The position numbers and the translations under genes were made by a program. Shown in pieces: positions 29,893 to 58,333 of a DNA stretch of 64,000 bases (position 1 is its first letter; each line of letters opens with the position of its first letter). The notes beneath the pieces are model-generated. The model worked only from the letters and a program-made list of their open reading frames with translations. It searched no databases and was not told where the DNA came from. The stretch is taken from sequence record MF360958.1. One strand, written 5' to 3'.

Positions 29893-30774
29893 ATGGGTAG
29901 AAAAAGCGAGATAAAAGATATGAATGAAAGCCATGATAATAAGCAAAAAGGATTAAATAAAGAATATGTTTATTTAGAAGATACAAATAAAGAAATAACG
30001 TCCTATAGTAATATCGTTCAAAAACCTGTGAATAATAATGAAAATAATAAACGCACATTTCGAAAACTAAAAAAATCTAGTAAAAAGAAAAATGATTATC
30101 AATGCGAACTCTGTAAAAAAACCTATAAAACCGAAAGGGGTCTTCTTTTTCATATGTGTGAAAGTAAAAAACGTATGAATGAAAAAGAACATCTTTATGC
30201 TCGCATTGCATTTATGGCTTATATTCGCTTTCATCAATTCATCCAGCCAGAAGGTTTTAAAAAAAGACCCAAAAAATATAGCGATTTTGTGAATAGTCCT
30301 TATTATAAAGGTTTTATTGATTTTGGTCATTATGTTGCAGATATGAACATGAATGAACCCGAAAAATACATTGATTTTCTCATAAAAAACAGTGTTCCTT
30401 TAAAAGATTGGAGTAATGATAGAATTTATGAATTATTTATAACAGACATTTTGAAAAAAGAAAAACCAGATAGAGCAATTGAACGTTCTATTAAAACAAT
30501 GAAGAAATGGGCCTCTGAAAACGAAACAACATGGATAAAGTACTTTGATGAGGCAAGCAATTTTCGTATTCTTTCTAATGTAAAAACAGGTAAGATAAGT
30601 CCTTGGATTATTTTCAATACCAAGACAGGCAAACAATTTCTAAAAAGTTTGAGAGATAATGAGATTGATTATGTCTATAACATAATCAATCCTGATTATT
30701 GGAATAAAAAGTTTGAAAAAAATGAAACTGATGCAAAAGCGGTATCTAATGTATTAAAAAATGCAGGCTTATAA
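29893..30774 (+). CDS. Conserved hypothetical protein with a C2H2/C2HC-like zinc finger
   Basis: YQCELCKKTYKTERGLLFHMC motif; conserved C-terminal GKISPW. Confidence 0.7.
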   Translation: MGRKSEIKDMNESHDNKQKGLNKEYVYLEDTNKEITSYSNIVQKPVNNNENNKRTFRKLKKSSKKKNDYQCELCKKTYKTERGLLFHMCESKKRMNEKEHLYARIAFMAYIRFHQFIQPEGFKKRPKKYSDFVNSPYYKGFIDFGHYVADMNMNEPEKYIDFLIKNSVPLKDWSNDRIYELFITDILKKEKPDRAIERSIKTMKKWASENETTWIKYFDEASNFRILSNVKTGKISPWIIFNTKTGKQFLKSLRDNEIDYVYNIINPDYWNKKFEKNETDAKAVSNVLKNAGL

Positions 30775-30784
30775 AGGAAAGAAT

Positions 30785-31597
30785 ATGAAACGAATTTTTA
30801 ATTACATTAATGAATTTTATTTTTTTATTAAAAATTTTCGTTATTTAGAGTATGTCATAGATGAATATATAAGTAAAGAAAATAGTAATTTTAAAAAGAA
30901 AATAGAATTAATTAAGTTGCCTTGGAAAGTTTTATTTCAAGGGAAAGAGAAAGATTTTTATGCTGTTGAATCGAAACAATATGCTTATAGTGAAGGAAAT
31001 AATCAAAAAGAATCTATTTATATTAATGGTATCATGACTGAATGCGATAAAGCACGCTATGAAGCCAAACAACTTTCGGAAGTATTTGGAAAACCTTTTA
31101 CTGTATTCTGGAACAAATCAAATGGTTTCTTTGAAGATATCTATGACTGTATCCGAATGAAAATTGGTAACAAGTCTGATACTTCTTCTAAAAAACTTGT
31201 TAAATATATTATTCATCGTGTTAATAAATATAATCTTAAAAAAATTTTTATTGTTGGCTACAGTCAAGGAAGTATTATCGCATCTCATGCAATAGAACAG
31301 CTTCCTAAAAATATACGTGATCGTGTCGAGATAAACCTACTTACTATGGGCTCAGCACAGGATAGCCTTCATACGTATTCTAAAAAAGGTACTGCTATAC
31401 ATTTATGTCATACTAATGATTTTGTGGCTCGTATGGGTGTGTTAAACTATCAAAAGAAAAATGTTATTAAAGGATATATTTTAGAAATCCCTAAAGATAC
31501 TCATAGCTTTGAAACATATTTACTAAGCCTTAAAAATATTCGTACTGTAAATCGCAATTACGAAAGTATATTGACAACCTTTAAAAAGTCTCTATAA
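30785..31597 (+). CDS. Alpha/beta hydrolase (lipase/cutinase-like); start revised to ATG 30785
   Basis: Nucleophile elbow IVGYSQGS, then LLTMGS, HTNDFV (Asp) and THSFETY (His). Confidence 0.7.
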   Translation: MKRIFNYINEFYFFIKNFRYLEYVIDEYISKENSNFKKKIELIKLPWKVLFQGKEKDFYAVESKQYAYSEGNNQKESIYINGIMTECDKARYEAKQLSEVFGKPFTVFWNKSNGFFEDIYDCIRMKIGNKSDTSSKKLVKYIIHRVNKYNLKKIFIVGYSQGSIIASHAIEQLPKNIRDRVEINLLTMGSAQDSLHTYSKKGTAIHLCHTNDFVARMGVLNYQKKNVIKGYILEIPKDTHSFETYLLSLKNIRTVNRNYESILTTFKKSL

Positions 31598-32868: not shown

Positions 32869-34359
32869 ATGGAGATATCAATGAATAATAATTATTCACA
32901 AAAAATTATCAATAATGTAAAAAATGAATATAACATTGTATATAATAAAAAAGATAATTTTAATGATTATTTAAAGAAAAATATCAATAAAAATAAGATT
33001 TCATCTGAAGAAGAGAACTTTTCTTCAGGGCCATATATCTTTAAACCTTTAACAAAAATTAAAGATCCAAAATATTATGATTTTATAAACACTAGAGATA
33101 AAACTGAAATTTATACAATTACTAGAAAAATTTTAACACAAATATGTTCAGAAATAAGAAAAGATAACTATGATCACAAATCATACATATGTGATATGTA
33201 TCGTTCATATGACTATATTGCTTTTCAAAATGTTCTAGAAAATTACCTAGTATTGCCATCATTTATGACACACATAGCACCTATTGCATGGCGAATAAGA
33301 GACGAGTTTCATCAGTACTGTTTAGAAAAATTCAATACTGAATTAACGAAAGCAGGTTTGTATGATATCTTCTATTCTAAAGATAGCACTTTAGGACGAG
33401 GAAATCATCTTTTAGAAAACTTTATGTTTAAAACACAAACTATATTTTATGCATATAATTCTTCTAATTATTATAAACTTATGCATTATTTTTTCATTTT
33501 AAGAATAATTGACAATAATTATTCTGATATAAGTTCTGATAATTTTTCTCAATACATGATTCCAGTTTTATCTTATATTATCTTCTTAAATAAAAAATTT
33601 GGGATGAATGAACAACCTTATGTTTATATGTACAATCACAATACAATATTTACATTATTCGACTCAAATATTGATATGAGTAACAACGACGTAGACGACT
33701 TTGATATGATCAATAATCATTGCTTAACATTATTACTTTGTAATCGAATTAATAATGATACTAAAACTTGTAAAGATAATTATGTTGAACTTATTAAGAA
33801 TTCAGATTCAATACAACAAATTATTAATACAAATTCTACAACTGAAAATTTGACACTTCAAAACTGCGAAGATCTAAACGAAATATTTAAATTTTCGGGT
33901 ATTAATGTTAATACTATGAATAAATTTATGAATGAAATATTTCATAGTGTTAATAACGATGAGAAAGATTTAAATCGATTTATAAAAGGAAAAACAATTG
34001 AAGAATTTAAACATTCTTTAATATATTTTATTAATAATTATTGTTATCTCATTAATTTCAAAAAATTAGAACCATTAATGGAAGAAAATATATCGAATAC
34101 ACTATCAAATATTAAAAATTATGCACAATATTATTCTAGTAATTTAAATAATGTTTTTGAAAAAGCACATGAAAAAGAATTAAATCCTAATAGAATATAC
34201 TTTTGTTCTAAAACATTCGATTGTTCACAGCAATTATTTTTTGGAAATATTACGTCTTACTTTAATATTTCACCATGCGTCCTTTATAACAAGGCACGTG
34301 ATGAATATGAAGAGGGCTTGATTGAAGATATGAGAGAATTTATATATGGCGTTCAATAA
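32869..34359 (+). CDS. Hypothetical protein (N/Y/I-rich)
   Basis: 496-aa ORF, very low GC, no recognisable motif. Confidence 0.7.
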   Translation: MEISMNNNYSQKIINNVKNEYNIVYNKKDNFNDYLKKNINKNKISSEEENFSSGPYIFKPLTKIKDPKYYDFINTRDKTEIYTITRKILTQICSEIRKDNYDHKSYICDMYRSYDYIAFQNVLENYLVLPSFMTHIAPIAWRIRDEFHQYCLEKFNTELTKAGLYDIFYSKDSTLGRGNHLLENFMFKTQTIFYAYNSSNYYKLMHYFFILRIIDNNYSDISSDNFSQYMIPVLSYIIFLNKKFGMNEQPYVYMYNHNTIFTLFDSNIDMSNNDVDDFDMINNHCLTLLLCNRINNDTKTCKDNYVELIKNSDSIQQIINTNSTTENLTLQNCEDLNEIFKFSGINVNTMNKFMNEIFHSVNNDEKDLNRFIKGKTIEEFKHSLIYFINNYCYLINFKKLEPLMEENISNTLSNIKNYAQYYSSNLNNVFEKAHEKELNPNRIYFCSKTFDCSQQLFFGNITSYFNISPCVLYNKARDEYEEGLIEDMREFIYGVQ

Positions 34360-34927
34360 AAAAACTGATATTGATATTGATATATTTGATCGTGATAAAG
34401 CTCTTAATGTTTTACCTCATGTTAACGCATCAATTATAAAAAATGATACAATCCGAGATCATAATGTGGGGATTTATCTTCAAGATATACCTACATTTAT
34501 GAATTATAATATGGCTTCTCTTGATTATAAAGAAGCTAGTAAACATGGGTTTTTTAAACTGGACATATTGAATAATACTATCTATGAGTATGTTGAAAGT
34601 GAACAACATCTTGATACCCTCTTAGCAACCGAGCCGGATTGGTCTTTACTTATTCATGACGATATTATACCAAAATTATTTCAAATTCATAAATACGGAT
34701 ACGAACTAAAAAAGTGGAAGCCTAATTCAATTATGAAACTGGCTATGTTCATTGCTATGATCCGGCCCGCTAAGAAATATCTATTAGATTATTCTAATTG
34801 GGAGGATATAAAAGAGGAAATATGGAAAAAACCAGATAATAATGATTCTCATTATTTTAAGAAATCACATAGTATTGCTTATGCAAATGTGATTCGAATA
34901 CAATTAAATTTATTATCTGGTTTTTAG
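34346..34927 (+). CDS. Minimal DNA polymerase III alpha (DnaE)-like catalytic-core protein
   Basis: 193 aa with collinear DnaE motifs DIDIDI, HNVGIY, FFKLDILN, LAMFIAMIRP, FKKSHSIAYA. Confidence 0.8.
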   Translation: MAFNKKTDIDIDIFDRDKALNVLPHVNASIIKNDTIRDHNVGIYLQDIPTFMNYNMASLDYKEASKHGFFKLDILNNTIYEYVESEQHLDTLLATEPDWSLLIHDDIIPKLFQIHKYGYELKKWKPNSIMKLAMFIAMIRPAKKYLLDYSNWEDIKEEIWKKPDNNDSHYFKKSHSIAYANVIRIQLNLLSGF

Positions 34928-35287
34928 TGTACGATTTTTTCTATTATTATTAGACTGATCTAGTATTTTTTGAAGTGAGGCAATATGTCCTGATTTTAAA
35001 TAGGTGGTTTTATAGGGTAAATGAGTCACATATTGCATAAATGGTTGAACATCTTTTGGATAAAAAATATTCATTGGAATAACACGATTAGAATACCACC
35101 ACCAATTTTGTGTTATTTTCATCAATGAAATTAATTCTTGTTGAGAATATAATTTCTCTATATTGATGAATGATATACTATTACGATCACAATTAAGTAT
35201 GATTCCATAATAATTACGGCCATCTTCAGTTTCTAAATGGCTTAAAAAAGGAAAAGAGGATTTTAATTTTTCAATCTCAAATTTCAT
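34913..35287 (-). CDS. Conserved hypothetical protein; start revised to ATG 35287
   Basis: RBS GGAG before MKFEIEK; FPFLS..YYGII..WWWYSNRVIPMN motif. Confidence 0.75.
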   Translation of the reverse strand: MKFEIEKLKSSFPFLSHLETEDGRNYYGIILNCDRNSISFINIEKLYSQQELISLMKITQNWWWYSNRVIPMNIFYPKDVQPFMQYVTHLPYKTTYLKSGHIASLQKILDQSNNNRKNRTLKTR

Positions 35288-35308: not shown

Positions 35309-36139
35309 ATGAATCATTTATATAAATACGCTTACACGATTCCTGTATTTAGGAATCGATTAAATGCTGAATTTACGGAAAATAATGTTATGTTTAACGA
35401 TACGTTAACTCTCTATAAAAATTTTAGTAATACTGTTCACTTCAAGGTCCGTGATCGCGACCGTCGTTCTGTAGATCTCTCTACGCAAGATGTAAAAATG
35501 ACGATCATTGATGATCATCTCGGTATTGAAGCAATGTCATTCTATTTATCAGCTTCACAAACTTCTAATATTGTAGAAACTCAAATTCTCCCAACTATGA
35601 TTGATGATCTAGAAGATGGTGTTTATTATTCCTACATTGTTTCTATTGTTCATAATAAAGATCAATCTGACGAATATTTAGAGCCATTATATACTGATCA
35701 TCATTTTGATATCACTGGAAGACTTTATATTAAAAGTCCTTTGAAGAAAGTTCAAGAATATGTACTGACTAAAAAGCGTCAACGTATTGAGAACTTCATG
35801 AACCGACTTATTAACCAATTCCAAGTACACGATAGTGAAGATGTTGATTATGTAGATGGTCAGTATTATTTTGACGAAATAATCTACACAAGCGACAACT
35901 ATATATCAAGTTCATTTATGTCCACCGATGGTTCAACTTGCGATATGGTTGTTCAGAAACATAATGGTAAAGATTATCCTATGAATCTACGTGATAATGC
36001 ACAATGGAAAAACGTCATTCAACATTTTGATGTCGGTGACACTAAACTTGATATTAAGCTTGATCTTTGGTCGTATTATCGTGTTGTCATAAAAACCCAA
36101 TCTCCCGATCCATTTCAGTTTACCATTCGCCATGCATGA
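35309..36139 (+). CDS. Conserved hypothetical protein (beta-rich N-terminal domain)
   Basis: 276 aa; LTLYKNFSNTVHFKVRDRDRRSVDL pattern recalled from related phages. Confidence 0.7.
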   Translation: MNHLYKYAYTIPVFRNRLNAEFTENNVMFNDTLTLYKNFSNTVHFKVRDRDRRSVDLSTQDVKMTIIDDHLGIEAMSFYLSASQTSNIVETQILPTMIDDLEDGVYYSYIVSIVHNKDQSDEYLEPLYTDHHFDITGRLYIKSPLKKVQEYVLTKKRQRIENFMNRLINQFQVHDSEDVDYVDGQYYFDEIIYTSDNYISSSFMSTDGSTCDMVVQKHNGKDYPMNLRDNAQWKNVIQHFDVGDTKLDIKLDLWSYYRVVIKTQSPDPFQFTIRHA

Positions 36140-36184: not shown

Positions 36185-37219
36185 ATGGATTTACTTAAAC
36201 AGATACTACTGAGTTATATTCCTTCAAAAAATACAAGAACAAGACATTGTATTTCATTCAACTGTCCTTGTTGTGTATATATGGGGGAATCACGTCCTGA
36301 TACGAAAGGCAGGGGTGGATTATTCATTGAATCCGATGAAATAGGCTATAACTGTTTCAATTGCGGGTTCAAGTTTCGCCAAGGTCCAAATGATGATTTT
36401 CATTTTAAAACGAAAAAATTCATGGAATTATTAGGAGTGAGTCAAGTTGATATTAATCGCATTCAGCTTGAGTTTATGAAAAATAATTATGCCAATGGAT
36501 TGTTAGGAGATTTGGTTGAACATAAATCAAAATCAAATACTATTCAGTATTCTTCCAATAGCCTTAACTTTAAAGAATGCAATTTACCAGCAAATACTCA
36601 TTACCTTAAAGATATCCTTATGGATAGTTCGCCCGATTCCGATGCATTTAAGGCATACAATTACGCTCAACAAAGGGGTATAGAAAATTGGCCTTATCTA
36701 ATGTGGTGCTCGCAAACAAAACATAAATTAAACAAGCGTTTAATAATTCCCTATTATCATGGTGAAAAAGTTGTTGGGTACACTGCTAGAGCATTTATAG
36801 ATAACATAGCGAAAGATGAGCGGTATTATTCATATACGCCTAATAATAACTATGTGTTCAATGTAGATTCGATTTTCAAGAAAAGACAATACTTGATTAT
36901 AAACGAATCTCCTATTGATTCACTGTTGTTTGATGGTGTTGCAACGATGACTTTTTCACCTAATAAGCAACAAGTGGATCTTATTAACAGTTCAAATGCT
37001 ACGAAAATTTTAGTTCCAGACTTAAATAACGAGTCTGGTAAAAAATTCATAGAAACAGCAGTGGATCAAAACTGGAATGTTTTCTTTCCTGATTGGGATT
37101 CAAATATGGATCTCGGAGAAGCCACAATTTACTATGGAAAGCTTTTCGTTATAAGCCAAATTATCAATAAGTCTATATCTTCTGCTATGAAGATTCGTGT
37201 TAAAGAAAAATTATACTAA
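36185..37219 (+). CDS. gp61: DNA primase (T4 gp61-like)
   Basis: Zn finger CPCC..RGG..YNCFNCG, RLIIP, GYTAR, TOPRIM ESPIDSL and PDLN. Confidence 0.88.
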   Translation: MDLLKQILLSYIPSKNTRTRHCISFNCPCCVYMGESRPDTKGRGGLFIESDEIGYNCFNCGFKFRQGPNDDFHFKTKKFMELLGVSQVDINRIQLEFMKNNYANGLLGDLVEHKSKSNTIQYSSNSLNFKECNLPANTHYLKDILMDSSPDSDAFKAYNYAQQRGIENWPYLMWCSQTKHKLNKRLIIPYYHGEKVVGYTARAFIDNIAKDERYYSYTPNNNYVFNVDSIFKKRQYLIINESPIDSLLFDGVATMTFSPNKQQVDLINSSNATKILVPDLNNESGKKFIETAVDQNWNVFFPDWDSNMDLGEATIYYGKLFVISQIINKSISSAMKIRVKEKLY

Positions 37220-37231
37220 TAAGGAGTCTAA

Positions 37232-38734
37232 ATGTACGATACTAATATCCAAAAGCTATATCTTGGAGTTATGCTTTCTGATGGTGATCTTTTAACCAAA
37301 GTAAAAAGCATAACAAAACCCAACTTATTCAGTAGAGAACTTCAAAAAGTAGTATCCGAAGTTCTAAGTTACGTCGATGAATATGATGGTATTCCTGATC
37401 CTACTTATATTGAAACAAAAACAAATGTTGAAATTAAGGTTCCTAATAAAATCGATGATTCAATCAGAGACTGGTTCTATGATGAATACCCTAAATTCTG
37501 CCTTCATAAAGCACTTGAAGAAGCAGTTATTAAAAGCACAGAACTAATCGAATCTGAAGATTATGATGGTGTAGAACAGCTTATTAAACAAGCTCAAGAA
37601 ACACGTCTAGTTAAAGATTATGGGCTTGATTACTCTGATAATCCTAAAGAACGTCTACAAGCAATTAAGGATCGTTCTGGTAACATCTCTACAGGTTTTG
37701 AATCACTGGATGATGTTGTAGGTAAAATTAATATAGGCGATTTGGTTATCTATGCTGGCGGTCCCGGTTCTGGTAAATCACTATTCCTACAGAACAACTC
37801 TCTCCATCATTATAGCGTTGAGGGCAAGAACGTAATGTATATTACGCTTGAGTTAAGCCCCGACCTTTGTGCGCAACGTATTGACTCTATGCTTTTGGAA
37901 CAGCCAACAAAACGGCTCTATGAAAATCTTGACGCAACCGATAAAGCTATTCGTAAAAAAACACAAGAGTTCGAGAAGCATCATAATGGGGGTATGATTA
38001 AAATTAAATACATGCCTTCAGGATCAACTACTAGTGATATTAAATCATTCGTGAAAGACTTTATGGTGACCACTGGTAATAAAGTCGATGTCCTAGTAGT
38101 AGACTATCTTGATCTTGTAAATCCCGCTCAAAAAGTCCAACTAGGAGATGTTTTCCAAAAAGATAAAGCAGTAAGTGAAGAATTACGTAACATGTCTCAA
38201 GAATTAGAAATGGTTTCTATAACAGCTTCACAGCTTAACCGTTCATCAGTTGGACAAGATGACCTTGATCATTCCCATATTGCGGGTGGTATTTCAAAGA
38301 TCAACACAGCCGATCTTGTACTTGGTATCATTATCACGGACGCTATGAGAGAAAAGGGTTATTACGAGCTACAGGCTCTTAAAGTACGTAATAACAATGG
38401 AACGGGACGTAGGGTACGGCTTGGATACAAAGAAAGCTGTATGAAGATTCACGATGATGAGGATCATTTGATAAATAACAATAGTGATGGAAAATCTCTT
38501 TCAGAAACTGAAGTGTTATTTAACGAAATTCAAAACGAACTTAACACTGATAATGAAAGTTATAATCCAATTGATATTGAAACGGGGAAAGTAAAGCCAT
38601 CACAAGATTTGATCGAAACGGATAAGAATGGAAATAATACTATTAATGTTCCAAAAGAAATGCGAACAGGATTAGGTAATGATAAAGCAGACCGTTTACG
38701 TTCAATGCTTAGAGATGATGACGACGATGTATAG
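37232..38734 (+). CDS. gp41: DnaB-like replicative helicase (T4 gp41-like)
   Basis: Walker A AGGPGSGKS, YITLEL, VVDYLDL, ASQLNR, LKVRN. Confidence 0.92.
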   Translation: MYDTNIQKLYLGVMLSDGDLLTKVKSITKPNLFSRELQKVVSEVLSYVDEYDGIPDPTYIETKTNVEIKVPNKIDDSIRDWFYDEYPKFCLHKALEEAVIKSTELIESEDYDGVEQLIKQAQETRLVKDYGLDYSDNPKERLQAIKDRSGNISTGFESLDDVVGKINIGDLVIYAGGPGSGKSLFLQNNSLHHYSVEGKNVMYITLELSPDLCAQRIDSMLLEQPTKRLYENLDATDKAIRKKTQEFEKHHNGGMIKIKYMPSGSTTSDIKSFVKDFMVTTGNKVDVLVVDYLDLVNPAQKVQLGDVFQKDKAVSEELRNMSQELEMVSITASQLNRSSVGQDDLDHSHIAGGISKINTADLVLGIIITDAMREKGYYELQALKVRNNNGTGRRVRLGYKESCMKIHDDEDHLINNNSDGKSLSETEVLFNEIQNELNTDNESYNPIDIETGKVKPSQDLIETDKNGNNTINVPKEMRTGLGNDKADRLRSMLRDDDDDV

Positions 38735-55063: not shown

Positions 55064-58000
55064 TCAATCATCATCTTCAACAAAAATTTCATGAAACTTA
55101 CTGCTTGCTTTAAGAATACCCATATCCCAATCAAGCACACCGAATATATTATTCACCTTTTTATAAAAGATAGTTTCAGCCATTGCTTCTATATCAAAAG
55201 GTAATTCTTTAAACCATTCCGGGAAATGAATTTGATCTGTAGGATAAGCAATCTTATCATATCCGTAATCATTGATTTTTAGAGGGCATACGATAACCTT
55301 GGAACCATTTTTAATTTTTTCCATATGATCTTCTTCAAAGAAATCCAATAATTCATTCCATGCTATTGCACCTGCAATAGCATTTGGAATCATTGTTTTA
55401 CCCCGTACACCTGCTTTAATTTCATTATGTATTTGAGTGTAATAATCAACAGCATTAGCACCTGACGGTTTACCAATAAGCCAAGGTTGTTTTTCAAGTA
55501 GATCTTTTTTGAATTCTATCAAATAGTTAAGAACTTTGGATTCATCTTCACCGTCAAGAAGCATATTGAGTGCTTTTTCCAACACATTTTGGATAATTTT
55601 TGGAGTATCAGAACGTTTGATTTCGATACCCATAATCTTTAGCTTACCGCTTTTACCATTAGTATCCTGTCGTATACCATCTTTATCAAAAAGATTCATA
55701 GCATAACGTTTCTTTTTAATGAACAGTGAATAGCTGGATATATTCTCTCTCCCTGCTTTGATAATAGAACCATTGTTTATCCCAGTATTGAAACGCTGAT
55801 TCATAAATTCAGGGAACGTCTTATTAGTATTTTCAGATATATTGTCATACAATTCTATTGATAAATCACGATCATTTTCCAAAGCACGAGCATATTTGAT
55901 TTTTTCTTCATCGTTGGAATTCATGAATGCTTCATACATAGAGAAATAACTACTATCCGTATTTTTAAGTAGAATATTATTTCCAAAAAACCAATTATGT
56001 TCAGCATTTTTCATTCCAACATCGTATACATATTCATTATCAAAATATCCTAGCCAGACAATATCCTCTATAGAGCATTTTAATACCTCTCCACATTTTA
56101 CTGTTATTAATACATCCTCACCTTTTACGATATCTTTAGGCGAAATTTTAATCATTCCATCATCATTTTCAATCATTATAGAATGATCTTCGGTAACAAT
56201 AACTTCATTATTGTTACTATCCCTAATAAGCCATTTTGATTTACTTGTTTTATGACGGTAAATATAATTGATTTCGCCATAATAACTAGTACCATTTTGG
56301 GGATCGTATGTTTTTACTTTTATACTTGGATCATATGAATACTCTTTACCAGTTTCACTATCTTCCCAAAATCTACTAGAATTTACAAATAGTTTTTCAA
56401 TAGTATACTCGCCGTTATTTGTCGAAATTATAGTATCATGCGTAACGCTATCACCATATATGATAGATTTTCCAAGATAATTATAATCCCCTTCAATAAG
56501 TTCGTTAATTTTACTACTCATATGACGAGTAATAGAACGTCCAGTTAAAGTTGTAGACTGACCAAGCCTTTTGTCATAGAAACGGAAATGCTTGTTAAGC
56601 AATGCACCATAAAGCGCGTTAAGCATGATCTTCTTAGCTAACTGTCGCTGATCCCAAAACTTGAAGTTAATTTCCGCTTGTCGTTTTTCTTCTCCATCAC
56701 TTAATTCTGATACTTTCTTTTCCCATTTTTCAGCTTCAGCTTGCATTTCTTTACGTTCTGCATACCAACGAGCAAGTAGTGTCGGGATTATACCATCTTT
56801 CTCTCTAGTAAAGACACTACCGTTTGCGCTAACAATGTATTTGTCGCTATTATAGATTAAATCATAAATCTTATAAGCAGGTGCGGTGATAGAATCTTCA
56901 GTGCGATTGAAATGTAGTATAACTTCTTCTTCACTTTGCTCATAAACTTTATCAAACTCGAAGGTATTGAATAAATCACCCCATGCTTCACGCGGAGAAT
57001 CTTTTTCACCATTATTGACTTGATCAATAATATACTGATCTGTCTGAGTTGTATCAATTTGAGCAACAAGAGTCTCGGGGCTCATATTGAGAGCACGTAT
57101 GGTAGATGGATATAGAGAATTGATATCGTTACCAGCTACAAGTTTTCTCATCCCTTTTTGGGGCGGACTAACGAATGCACCCGCTGCACCGCTTTCGGAC
57201 TCATCCGCTTCGGTTTTTGAAGGGAAAATATAAACCTTATCGCTAAAGTAATGGCCTTGATTAAGTATAGCCTGTTCAGTAATGGACACAGTACCAAGCG
57301 TGGTTTCCATCAATACACCATTACTGTGTGCTAGTAGGTTTGTAAGATCGATAAACTTCTTACGGTCATCCAACATTTTAATAAGGTAGGTGTCCTTTAT
57401 GTTATAGCGAACGAAGTTTCTAAAATCATACTTATAGAGATGATCTAGAGAATAAGGATAATCAATTTTTTCTTCATCAAGCTCGACATAAGATACGTGA
57501 TTCAATGCATAACTGGATAACTCAGTGTATGTATATGTTTTATACAGCTCCATATAATCAAGATGAACACGTCCTAAACAATCATAGTACGTTTCTTCAC
57601 GTTTGAACTTTTTGTTGTACTGTGTTCTCTCAGCAGGATCTTTACCCAATAAACATAGATCTTTTAGGTAATAAGGACCAATGATTTTAGGAATTCTATT
57701 AGTAAGATATTTAAAGTCATACATCTTACTGTTCCATCCGGTAATAACATCAGCATCTTCAATTAAATGAAGGAAACATTTTAGTAGATCGCCTTCATCA
57801 TCAAATACCCACATTTTTACATCATAAGGGGCATCATCATATTCTTTAAGAACTTCATCACACTCATGCTCAGCCTGTTCTGGAGTCATTGTTGGTGGTG
57901 GTAGTACAAGCATATGCATCGTATCACACCAATCTTGTTGAACTGAAACAGATATGACTGGATTATCAGCACGATCCGGTGTTGAATATTTGTTTTCGGG

Positions 58001-58333
58001 AGTGTAACCAACCTCAATGTCATAAAAAACAATATGAAGCGGCGGGGTTTTATTAAAATCATAGTTCTTACTTAAATAGCGAAAAATTGGGTTTACATCG
58101 TCTTCATAAACTTTTTCTTTAGGAAATTGACTTTTAGCATTATAAAATTCGGATGCTTTATTAAAAGCATAACGAACGCACTTTTCTCCGAATATAGTTT
58201 CATAATCTCCATATTCATCTTCTACATAAAAAACAAAATCGAGTTTATCTTTGATAACTCGACGCTGCCCACTATCATCACGTTCCAAAATAATGATATC
58301 GTTTTTATCTCTTACCGCGCTTATGTAACTCAT
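55064..58333 (-). CDS. gp43: Family B DNA polymerase (T4 gp43-like) with intein
   Basis: Exonuclease motifs FYDIEV, GWNSKMYDF, YNIKD; polymerase motifs DINSLYPS, KIMLNALYG, YGD|TDS split by the intein. Confidence 0.95.
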   Translation of the reverse strand: MSYISAVRDKNDIIILERDDSGQRRVIKDKLDFVFYVEDEYGDYETIFGEKCVRYAFNKASEFYNAKSQFPKEKVYEDDVNPIFRYLSKNYDFNKTPPLHIVFYDIEVGYTPENKYSTPDRADNPVISVSVQQDWCDTMHMLVLPPPTMTPEQAEHECDEVLKEYDDAPYDVKMWVFDDEGDLLKCFLHLIEDADVITGWNSKMYDFKYLTNRIPKIIGPYYLKDLCLLGKDPAERTQYNKKFKREETYYDCLGRVHLDYMELYKTYTYTELSSYALNHVSYVELDEEKIDYPYSLDHLYKYDFRNFVRYNIKDTYLIKMLDDRKKFIDLTNLLAHSNGVLMETTLGTVSITEQAILNQGHYFSDKVYIFPSKTEADESESGAAGAFVSPPQKGMRKLVAGNDINSLYPSTIRALNMSPETLVAQIDTTQTDQYIIDQVNNGEKDSPREAWGDLFNTFEFDKVYEQSEEEVILHFNRTEDSITAPAYKIYDLIYNSDKYIVSANGSVFTREKDGIIPTLLARWYAERKEMQAEAEKWEKKVSELSDGEEKRQAEINFKFWDQRQLAKKIMLNALYGALLNKHFRFYDKRLGQSTTLTGRSITRHMSSKINELIEGDYNYLGKSIIYGDSVTHDTIISTNNGEYTIEKLFVNSSRFWEDSETGKEYSYDPSIKVKTYDPQNGTSYYGEINYIYRHKTSKSKWLIRDSNNNEVIVTEDHSIMIENDDGMIKISPKDIVKGEDVLITVKCGEVLKCSIEDIVWLGYFDNEYVYDVGMKNAEHNWFFGNNILLKNTDSSYFSMYEAFMNSNDEEKIKYARALENDRDLSIELYDNISENTNKTFPEFMNQRFNTGINNGSIIKAGRENISSYSLFIKKKRYAMNLFDKDGIRQDTNGKSGKLKIMGIEIKRSDTPKIIQNVLEKALNMLLDGEDESKVLNYLIEFKKDLLEKQPWLIGKPSGANAVDYYTQIHNEIKAGVRGKTMIPNAIAGAIAWNELLDFFEEDHMEKIKNGSKVIVCPLKINDYGYDKIAYPTDQIHFPEWFKELPFDIEAMAETIFYKKVNNIFGVLDWDMGILKASSKFHEIFVEDDD
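55961..56449 (-). mobile_element. 163-aa mini-intein at the YGD/TDS (pol-c) site, lacking a homing endonuclease
   Basis: Starts SVTHD; block B TEDH; block F YVYDVG; ends LLKN followed by +1 Thr; removal restores YGDTDS. Confidence 0.92.

Follow-up and report, generated by a model that had tools for sequence, protein, structure and literature searches.

We analysed a window of 64,000 nucleotides from sequence record MF360958.1, the 440-kb genome of Salicola phage SCTP-2 (window position 1 is record position 124001). The subject of this work is gp151, an open reading frame (ORF) of 193 amino acids (aa) with an ATG start, which an earlier note had described at this place as a "mini-DnaE". The ORF exists as described. 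We propose that it encodes one half, the C-unit, of a split minimal DNA polymerase III (Pol III) alpha, whose other half, the N-unit, is encoded by gp291, 116 kb away. The two genes are:

34346-34927, + strand (record 158346-158927): gp151, 193 aa, proposed C-unit; assigned from phrog_11778, an AlphaFold (AF2) model, a residue map and conservation.
Record 274489-275034, about 150489 in window numbering and so outside the window: gp291, 181 aa, labelled hypothetical in the record; proposed N-unit with the nucleoside triphosphate (NTP)-binding half of the palm; assigned from PF07733.

Searches of Pfam and the PDB with the gp151 sequence alone returned nothing relevant, and the link to Pol III alpha is visible only through the family profile and the structure. 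gp151 matches phrog_11778 ("DNA polymerase", 197 positions) from end to end (E 5.6e-92) and, faintly, a polymerase PHROG of 1190 positions. As the earlier note had stated, similar short ORFs are annotated in related jumbo phages; in relatives the orthologues are labelled "DNA polymerase", "DNA polymerase III alpha" or "hypothetical protein". When the C-unit family profile was compared with the PDB, Pol III alpha chains were the sole ones reached (E ~0.9), and the matches were colinear: profile positions 94-140 paired with E. coli alpha 594-641, and positions 166-179 with 754-767. Moreover, 28 of 36 C-unit members matched weakly the Pfam domain DNA_pol3_finger (PF17657).

A structural comparison with the DnaE palm, which the earlier note had proposed, was performed with the AF2 model of gp151 (predicted local distance difference test, pLDDT, 92.1; predicted template modelling score, pTM, 0.85). 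In Foldseek, C-family polymerases made up 12 of the top 13 matches. Using VIA-align, C-family polymerases were the sole matches (Z 6.1-9.7, over 175-191 of the 193 residues), with unrelated folds starting from Z 3.9. In support of this, a Foldseek-independent, exhaustive search of 48,161 chains was led by the same seven polymerases (Z 6.3-9.6), the next fold having Z 4.1. As expected, because the gp151 fold is incomplete, none of the Pol-beta/X-family, CCA-adding or cGAS-type enzymes matched the model in this exhaustive search. Segment alignments of gp151 to E. coli dnaE produced the following residue map:

C-unit D8, D10 and D12: E. coli alpha D401, D403 and D405.
C-unit H39: E. coli alpha H511.
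C-unit K71 and D73: E. coli alpha K553 and D555.
C-unit R140-P141: E. coli alpha R639-P640.
C-unit K173-S174-H175: E. coli alpha K758-S759-H760.
C-unit Y179: E. coli alpha Y764.

In E. coli alpha, D401, D403 and D555 are catalytic, and the steric gate that keeps out ribonucleotides is the invariant H760 (PMC8485763). The earlier note was right that gp151 keeps all three catalytic aspartates, as D8, D10 and D73, and the motifs that it had listed, DxD (DIDID), KLD, RP and KSH..AY, are present, conserved and colinear with E. coli alpha.

Overall, gp151 matches E. coli alpha from about 395 to 778 with about half of the residues removed. The structural alignment begins at E. coli 395-399, and the C-terminus of gp151 is the equivalent of residue 778. 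Within this range, 12 C-unit residues (27-38) replace E. coli 419-510, and 29 residues (142-170) replace 641-755 of the fingers. The thumb reportedly lies within E. coli alpha 419-510, by the domain limits ascribed to Lamers et al. 2006. gp151 comprises the Mg2+-binding palm strands (D8, D10, D73, K71) and a reduced finger module (R140-P141, K172-K173, H175, Y179). Only about six residues precede the DxD strand in gp151, so the N-terminal palm half is missing, and with it the triphosphate-binding loop, which is the R-G-S loop R362-G363-S364 of E. coli.

The C-unit belongs to a large family. Grouped at 90% identity, the matches of a word search form at least 414 clusters, and the 120 of these that were listed are 187-210 aa long. 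An exhaustive profile search, with clusters at 50% identity, returned 531 representatives, 358 of them at E <= 1e-10. Among those listed from the 531, nearly all have 180-220 aa or are shorter pieces on short contigs. Conservation was measured per residue in 102 full-length representatives of 50%-identity clusters. D8 and D10 are each present in all 100 ungapped rows, K71 and D73 in 102 of 102, and D12 in 98. H39 is found in 99 representatives, R140 in 100, P141 in 101 and the steric-gate H175 in 97; K172 is kept in 93 (with R in 6 more) and Y179 in 89 (with F in 8 more). The earlier note had named loss of the catalytic aspartates in orthologues, or decay from a host dnaE, as results that would speak against it. 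Instead, the aspartates are near-invariant in the 102 representatives and the family is widespread and conserved. In the family alignment the C-unit tails are variable, and no conserved clamp-binding tail was evident by eye at their C-terminus.

Next, the whole SCTP-2 record was scanned for PF07733, and one match lay above the cut-off (E 3.7e-11, record 274801-275034), in gp291. The N-unit family comprises at least 140 clusters, all with PF07733, and its core W-G-x-G-R-G-S-S is invariant, with R150-G151-S152 kept in 76 of 76. hhalign placed gp291 135-181 on E. coli alpha 347-393 (probability 91%, E 1.2e-6), pairing R150-G151-S152 with R362-G363-S364, the loop that gp151 lacks. In the gp291 model (pLDDT 91.9), residues 85-181 match C-family chains (Z 7.4-12.2), and no other fold exceeds Z 3.0. 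Residues 1-84 (L005:1189-1440) form an extra, less conserved N-terminal domain of about 84 residues, for which no structural match was found (best Z 2.2) and which takes the place held by the PHP domain in cellular alpha. On four independent templates, the N-unit ends where the C-unit starts, without overlap or gap (residues covered by N-unit 85-181, and by the C-unit model in VIA-align):

E. coli alpha: N-unit 278-393, C-unit 395-778.
Thermus alpha: N-unit 296-455, C-unit 456-835.
M. tuberculosis DnaE1: N-unit 305-413, C-unit 415-805.
PolC: N-unit 823-965, C-unit 966-1293.

The two halves also travel together. By tblastn, 96 phage records contain the C-unit and 101 the N-unit, the counts per genus being nearly the same, and each half is single-copy in all the split-form genomes checked (SCTP-2, Atu_ph07, PAC2, 121Q and Slicko01). 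The surplus N-unit records include six of Bacteroides phages. Bacteroides phage SJC03 (167 kb) encodes an unsplit, full-length alpha-like protein of 1274 aa (L013:2256-6080), labelled hypothetical, and five related Bacteroides phage records gave the same partial N-unit-like match. In relatives of SCTP-2 the two halves are 31-182 kb apart. Alishewanella phage vB_AspM_Slicko01, of 141 kb, carries both about 11 kb apart (N-unit L014:3228-3740; C-unit OQ508956.1 67591-68154), both labelled hypothetical; therefore, the split enzyme is not limited to phages larger than 200 kb. The gene order on the 3' side of each half is fixed. Downstream of the C-unit, in a comparison across phages of Salicola, Agrobacterium, Pseudomonas and E. 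coli, lie a convergent overlapping phrog_11637 ORF, an ORF of 240-330 aa, the primase and the helicase. Downstream of the N-unit lie an ORF of about 115-150 aa, a GroES-like co-chaperonin and a gp44-type clamp loader.

Moreover, three metagenome assemblies each contain a natural fusion of N-unit and C-unit of 375-376 aa. In P0290 (L019:1066-2193, 375 aa), the N-unit occupies residues 14-184 (hhalign probability 99.6%, E 6.8e-25) and the C-unit residues 190-373, and a plain linker of 10 residues lies at exactly the split junction. The two others, one of which is P0392 (L020:519-1649), are 78-81% identical to P0290 and come from other assemblies. The fused gene occupies the C-unit locus and retains the phrog_11637 and phrog_14467 neighbours. 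In a quick IQ-TREE search with 107 C-units and a midpoint root, the fused clade (Shimodaira-Hasegawa-like approximate likelihood ratio test, SH-aLRT, 100) lies five nodes deep (support 85-94) among standalone C-units of 206-218 aa. Because of this nesting, the fusion is probably secondary, that is, derived in that lineage. Two further proteins, P0404 and P0405 (540-551 aa), carry PHP plus PF07733 and match the fused form distantly; they could be truncated or intermediate-size alpha homologues.

Between them, gp151 and gp291 lack the PHP, thumb, distal finger, HhH/clamp-binding, OB and tau-binding domains. A search of the whole SCTP-2 genome found no PHP domain (PF02811), no further Pol III finger domain and no DnaQ-type exonuclease (DnaQ/RNase_T). 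The structural alignment and this genome scan support the statement of the earlier note that PHP, most of the fingers, the clamp-binding domain and OB are absent.

The surroundings of gp151 in the window are as follows:

32869-34359, + strand: gp150, a 496-aa ORF with a sub-threshold match to Pfam PriX (primase X; E 0.0017) and without a PHROG match.
34913-35287, - strand: gp152, a convergent ORF of 124 aa as annotated; phrog_11637 (E 5.8e-46).
35309-36139, + strand: gp153, 276 aa, between the C-unit and the primase; weak phrog_14467 match (E 0.0031) and synteny.
36185-37219, + strand: DNA primase (T4 gp61-like); phrog_47 (E 5.7e-26) and synteny; the record annotation places its start at window 36281.
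37232-38734, + strand: DnaB-type replicative helicase (T4 gp41 homologue); PF03796 DnaB_C (E 4.5e-21), phrog_19 (E 1.1e-74) and record annotation.
55064-58333, - strand: complete family B DNA polymerase, a 1089-aa ORF; PF00136 (E 6.5e-21 and 1.3e-6) in one stop-free frame.

The gene is placed just upstream of primase and helicase, with a complete family B polymerase elsewhere in the same window, as had been noted before; the latter is presumed to be the main replicase of SCTP-2. gp152 overlaps the 3' end of the gp151 gene by about 15 nucleotides, and its place and orientation are kept in Atu_ph07, PBECO4 and PAC2 and beside the fused form. An Atlas search gave no informative match for gp152, which is a candidate accessory partner of the C-unit. 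The equivalents of gp153 in relatives are labelled "virion structural protein", and the corresponding ORF beside the fused form matches phrog_14467 at E 8.3e-14. On the other side, gp150 overlaps the start codon of gp151 by 14 nucleotides. It was considered as the missing N-terminal half and rejected: it matches no PHROG and nothing of Pol III, the small ORFs found at that place in relatives are unrelated, and the true N-unit lies elsewhere. Further upstream, a 278-aa ORF (30761-31597, + strand), labelled hypothetical in the record, matches an alpha/beta-hydrolase (cutinase/lipase-like) Pfam family (PF01083, E 2.4e-7).

Taken together, these results argue strongly for a C-family polymerase core that is stripped down and made of two proteins, of which gp151 supplies the C-terminal half, on the side of the metals and the template, and gp291 the other half; we consider this reading probable. 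The earlier note was correct in seeing a DnaE-derived, catalytic-looking protein; the reading as a self-sufficient, complete enzyme does not stand, since gp151 is only half, and the NTP-binding half of the palm is encoded as gp291. Mechanistically, gp151 and gp291 would associate non-covalently and rebuild one Pol-beta-like nucleotidyltransferase palm. The helical side of the palm and the loop for the triphosphate would come from the N-unit; the C-unit would provide the sheet that carries the two-metal carboxylates, as well as the finger helices, which would hold and select the deoxynucleoside triphosphate (dNTP). The heterodimer would then add deoxynucleoside monophosphates to a primer 3'-OH on a template. 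Because PHP/DnaQ, thumb, HhH/clamp-binding and OB domains are missing, it is predicted to be distributive, non-proofreading and dependent on partners for its recruitment.

Which role such a heterodimer would play is more speculative. The C-unit gene is fixed beside primase and helicase, and the N-unit gene beside the clamp loader, so an accessory replisome polymerase working beside the family B replicase, for primer extension before hand-off or for gap filling, is a tentative suggestion that we regard as possible but not as the expected outcome. Somewhat more doubtful still is a bolder version of it, in which gp291 plus gp151, and the 375-aa fusions, would be the smallest active C-family polymerase known (about 290 core residues), a primer-extension or hand-off enzyme docked to the primase-helicase, with the split tying its activity to replisome assembly.

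Several points weigh against our interpretation. Profile comparisons show only a weak similarity between the C-unit and DnaE (E ~0.9, as above; hhalign probability 12%), and therefore the assignment rests on the predicted structure and the colinearity of the motifs. Binding of gp151 to gp291 is inferred, with indirect support from the exact junction and the natural fusions, and the replisome role, for which the evidence is the gene neighbourhood, is plausible. Since the thumb, most of the fingers and all duplex-binding modules have been lost, templated, primer-dependent synthesis is uncertain. Finally, as the earlier note had stated, no functional characterisation is known: in the literature on any member of the family, we found no biochemical or genetic data.

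Other explanations were weighed against the same evidence. That gp151 alone could be a self-sufficient miniature polymerase or nucleotidyltransferase is suggested by its three catalytic aspartates and its steric-gate helix, and by a model that is predicted to fold confidently on its own. Nevertheless, the protein starts at the DxD strand, and the R-G-S loop and palm helices it lacks are invariant in gp291; no transferase of the types searched for matched its model; and the N-unit co-occurs with the gp151 family and is fused to the C-unit in some lineages. We therefore regard a self-sufficient gp151 as very improbable. More credible, although still unlikely, is that the halves assemble into something other than a templated polymerase: a template-independent terminal transferase, a transferase that modifies nucleotides or makes signal molecules, or a mainly structural or regulatory part of the replisome. 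This would fit the absence of thumb, most fingers, HhH, clamp-binding and OB modules, the failure to find a proofreader in the SCTP-2 genome, and the fact that this phage already has a complete family B replicase. However, the finger helices that were retained are those touching the incoming dNTP, the steric-gate histidine (97 of 102), R140-P141 and K172/K173 are conserved as in replicative alpha, and both genes lie within replication modules.

Two further readings have next to no probability. If a host dnaE had been captured and had decayed to a fragment or pseudogene, the ORF would be short and span only part of alpha, as gp151 does. This reading is refuted by conservation: since the active-site residues are essentially fixed in the 102 representatives, decay is excluded, and the near-uniform length among the clusters listed at 50% and 90% identity (from 531 representatives and at least 414 clusters, respectively; some shorter pieces lie on short contigs), the synteny across phages of four host genera and the precision of the deletions at the domain level point the same way. 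Covalent rejoining of the halves by a split intein, for its part, has a precedent in cyanobacteria, where dnaE consists of two distant genes whose products are rejoined by trans-splicing (PMC3919608). Here, the N-unit stops at the equivalent of alpha ~393 without any extension and the C-unit begins about six residues before the DxD strand; because there is no extra sequence at either place, there is no room for intein halves of about 100 and 35 residues. The plain linker of the natural fusions agrees with this, and the sequence excludes an intein.

The chief value of this analysis lies in a correction, namely that the ORF encodes only half of an enzyme, whose second half has been located. It is unusual for replication to combine a family B replicase with a two-piece Pol III alpha core of about 290 residues, and the split core would define the minimal needs of C-family polymerase catalysis. 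The natural single-chain fusions are the simplest construct for a first activity test.

Compared with bacterial Pol III alpha (DnaE1-3 and PolC; PDB 2HNH, 3E0D, 5LEW and 3F2B), the phage protein pair has the same palm and finger core and shares the catalytic triad, K553, the R-G-S loop, the R-P motif and the K-S-H steric-gate helix; however, the phage core has about 290 residues in two chains, whereas E. coli 278-778 has about 500 in one. As in the cyanobacterial intein-split DnaE, alpha is encoded by two distant genes, but the cyanobacterial protein is full length and is rejoined covalently by its split intein, while the phage one has no intein and is split inside the palm. Bacillus subtilis DnaE working with PolC offers a possible functional analogy only: a second C-family polymerase briefly extends primase products before a hand-off (PMC5627055). 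B. subtilis DnaE is a full-length, clamp-binding alpha, in contrast to the phage pair, and the presumed main replicase of SCTP-2 differs in being family B.

The closest known system is the "split minimal Pol III alpha" that Iyer, Anantharaman, Krishnan, Burroughs and Aravind described computationally in 2021 (Viruses 13:63; PMC7824862) in group 2.2 jumbo phages, in a dataset that includes SCTP-2. The earlier note was unaware of this description. These authors suggested that the enzyme works with the family B polymerase in making one of the strands, or in repair; the roles on which the earlier note had speculated (primer extension, hand-off from primase, addition of nucleotides) are suggestions of a similar kind. 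The split form was proposed as a model of the ancestral bacterial replicase (PMC7824862). gp151 and gp291 are of the same kind and thus already known: a standalone Mg2+- and template-binding C-unit and an NTP-binding N-unit encoded by distant genes, with a family B polymerase present and no other Pol III domains. The N-unit of Atu_ph07, gp316, had already been named a Pol III alpha subunit in the paper on that phage; the PA5oct omics paper mentions neither half, and the split halves are not covered in the Timinskas 2014 survey or in a 2026 survey of bacterial polymerases. In the text consulted, PMC7824862 does not mention the natural fusions. To the 2021 description, the present analysis adds the exact junction on four solved structures, the per-residue conservation and the neighbourhoods of both halves, together with a 141-kb, sub-jumbo carrier and three natural single-chain fusions that appear to be derived.

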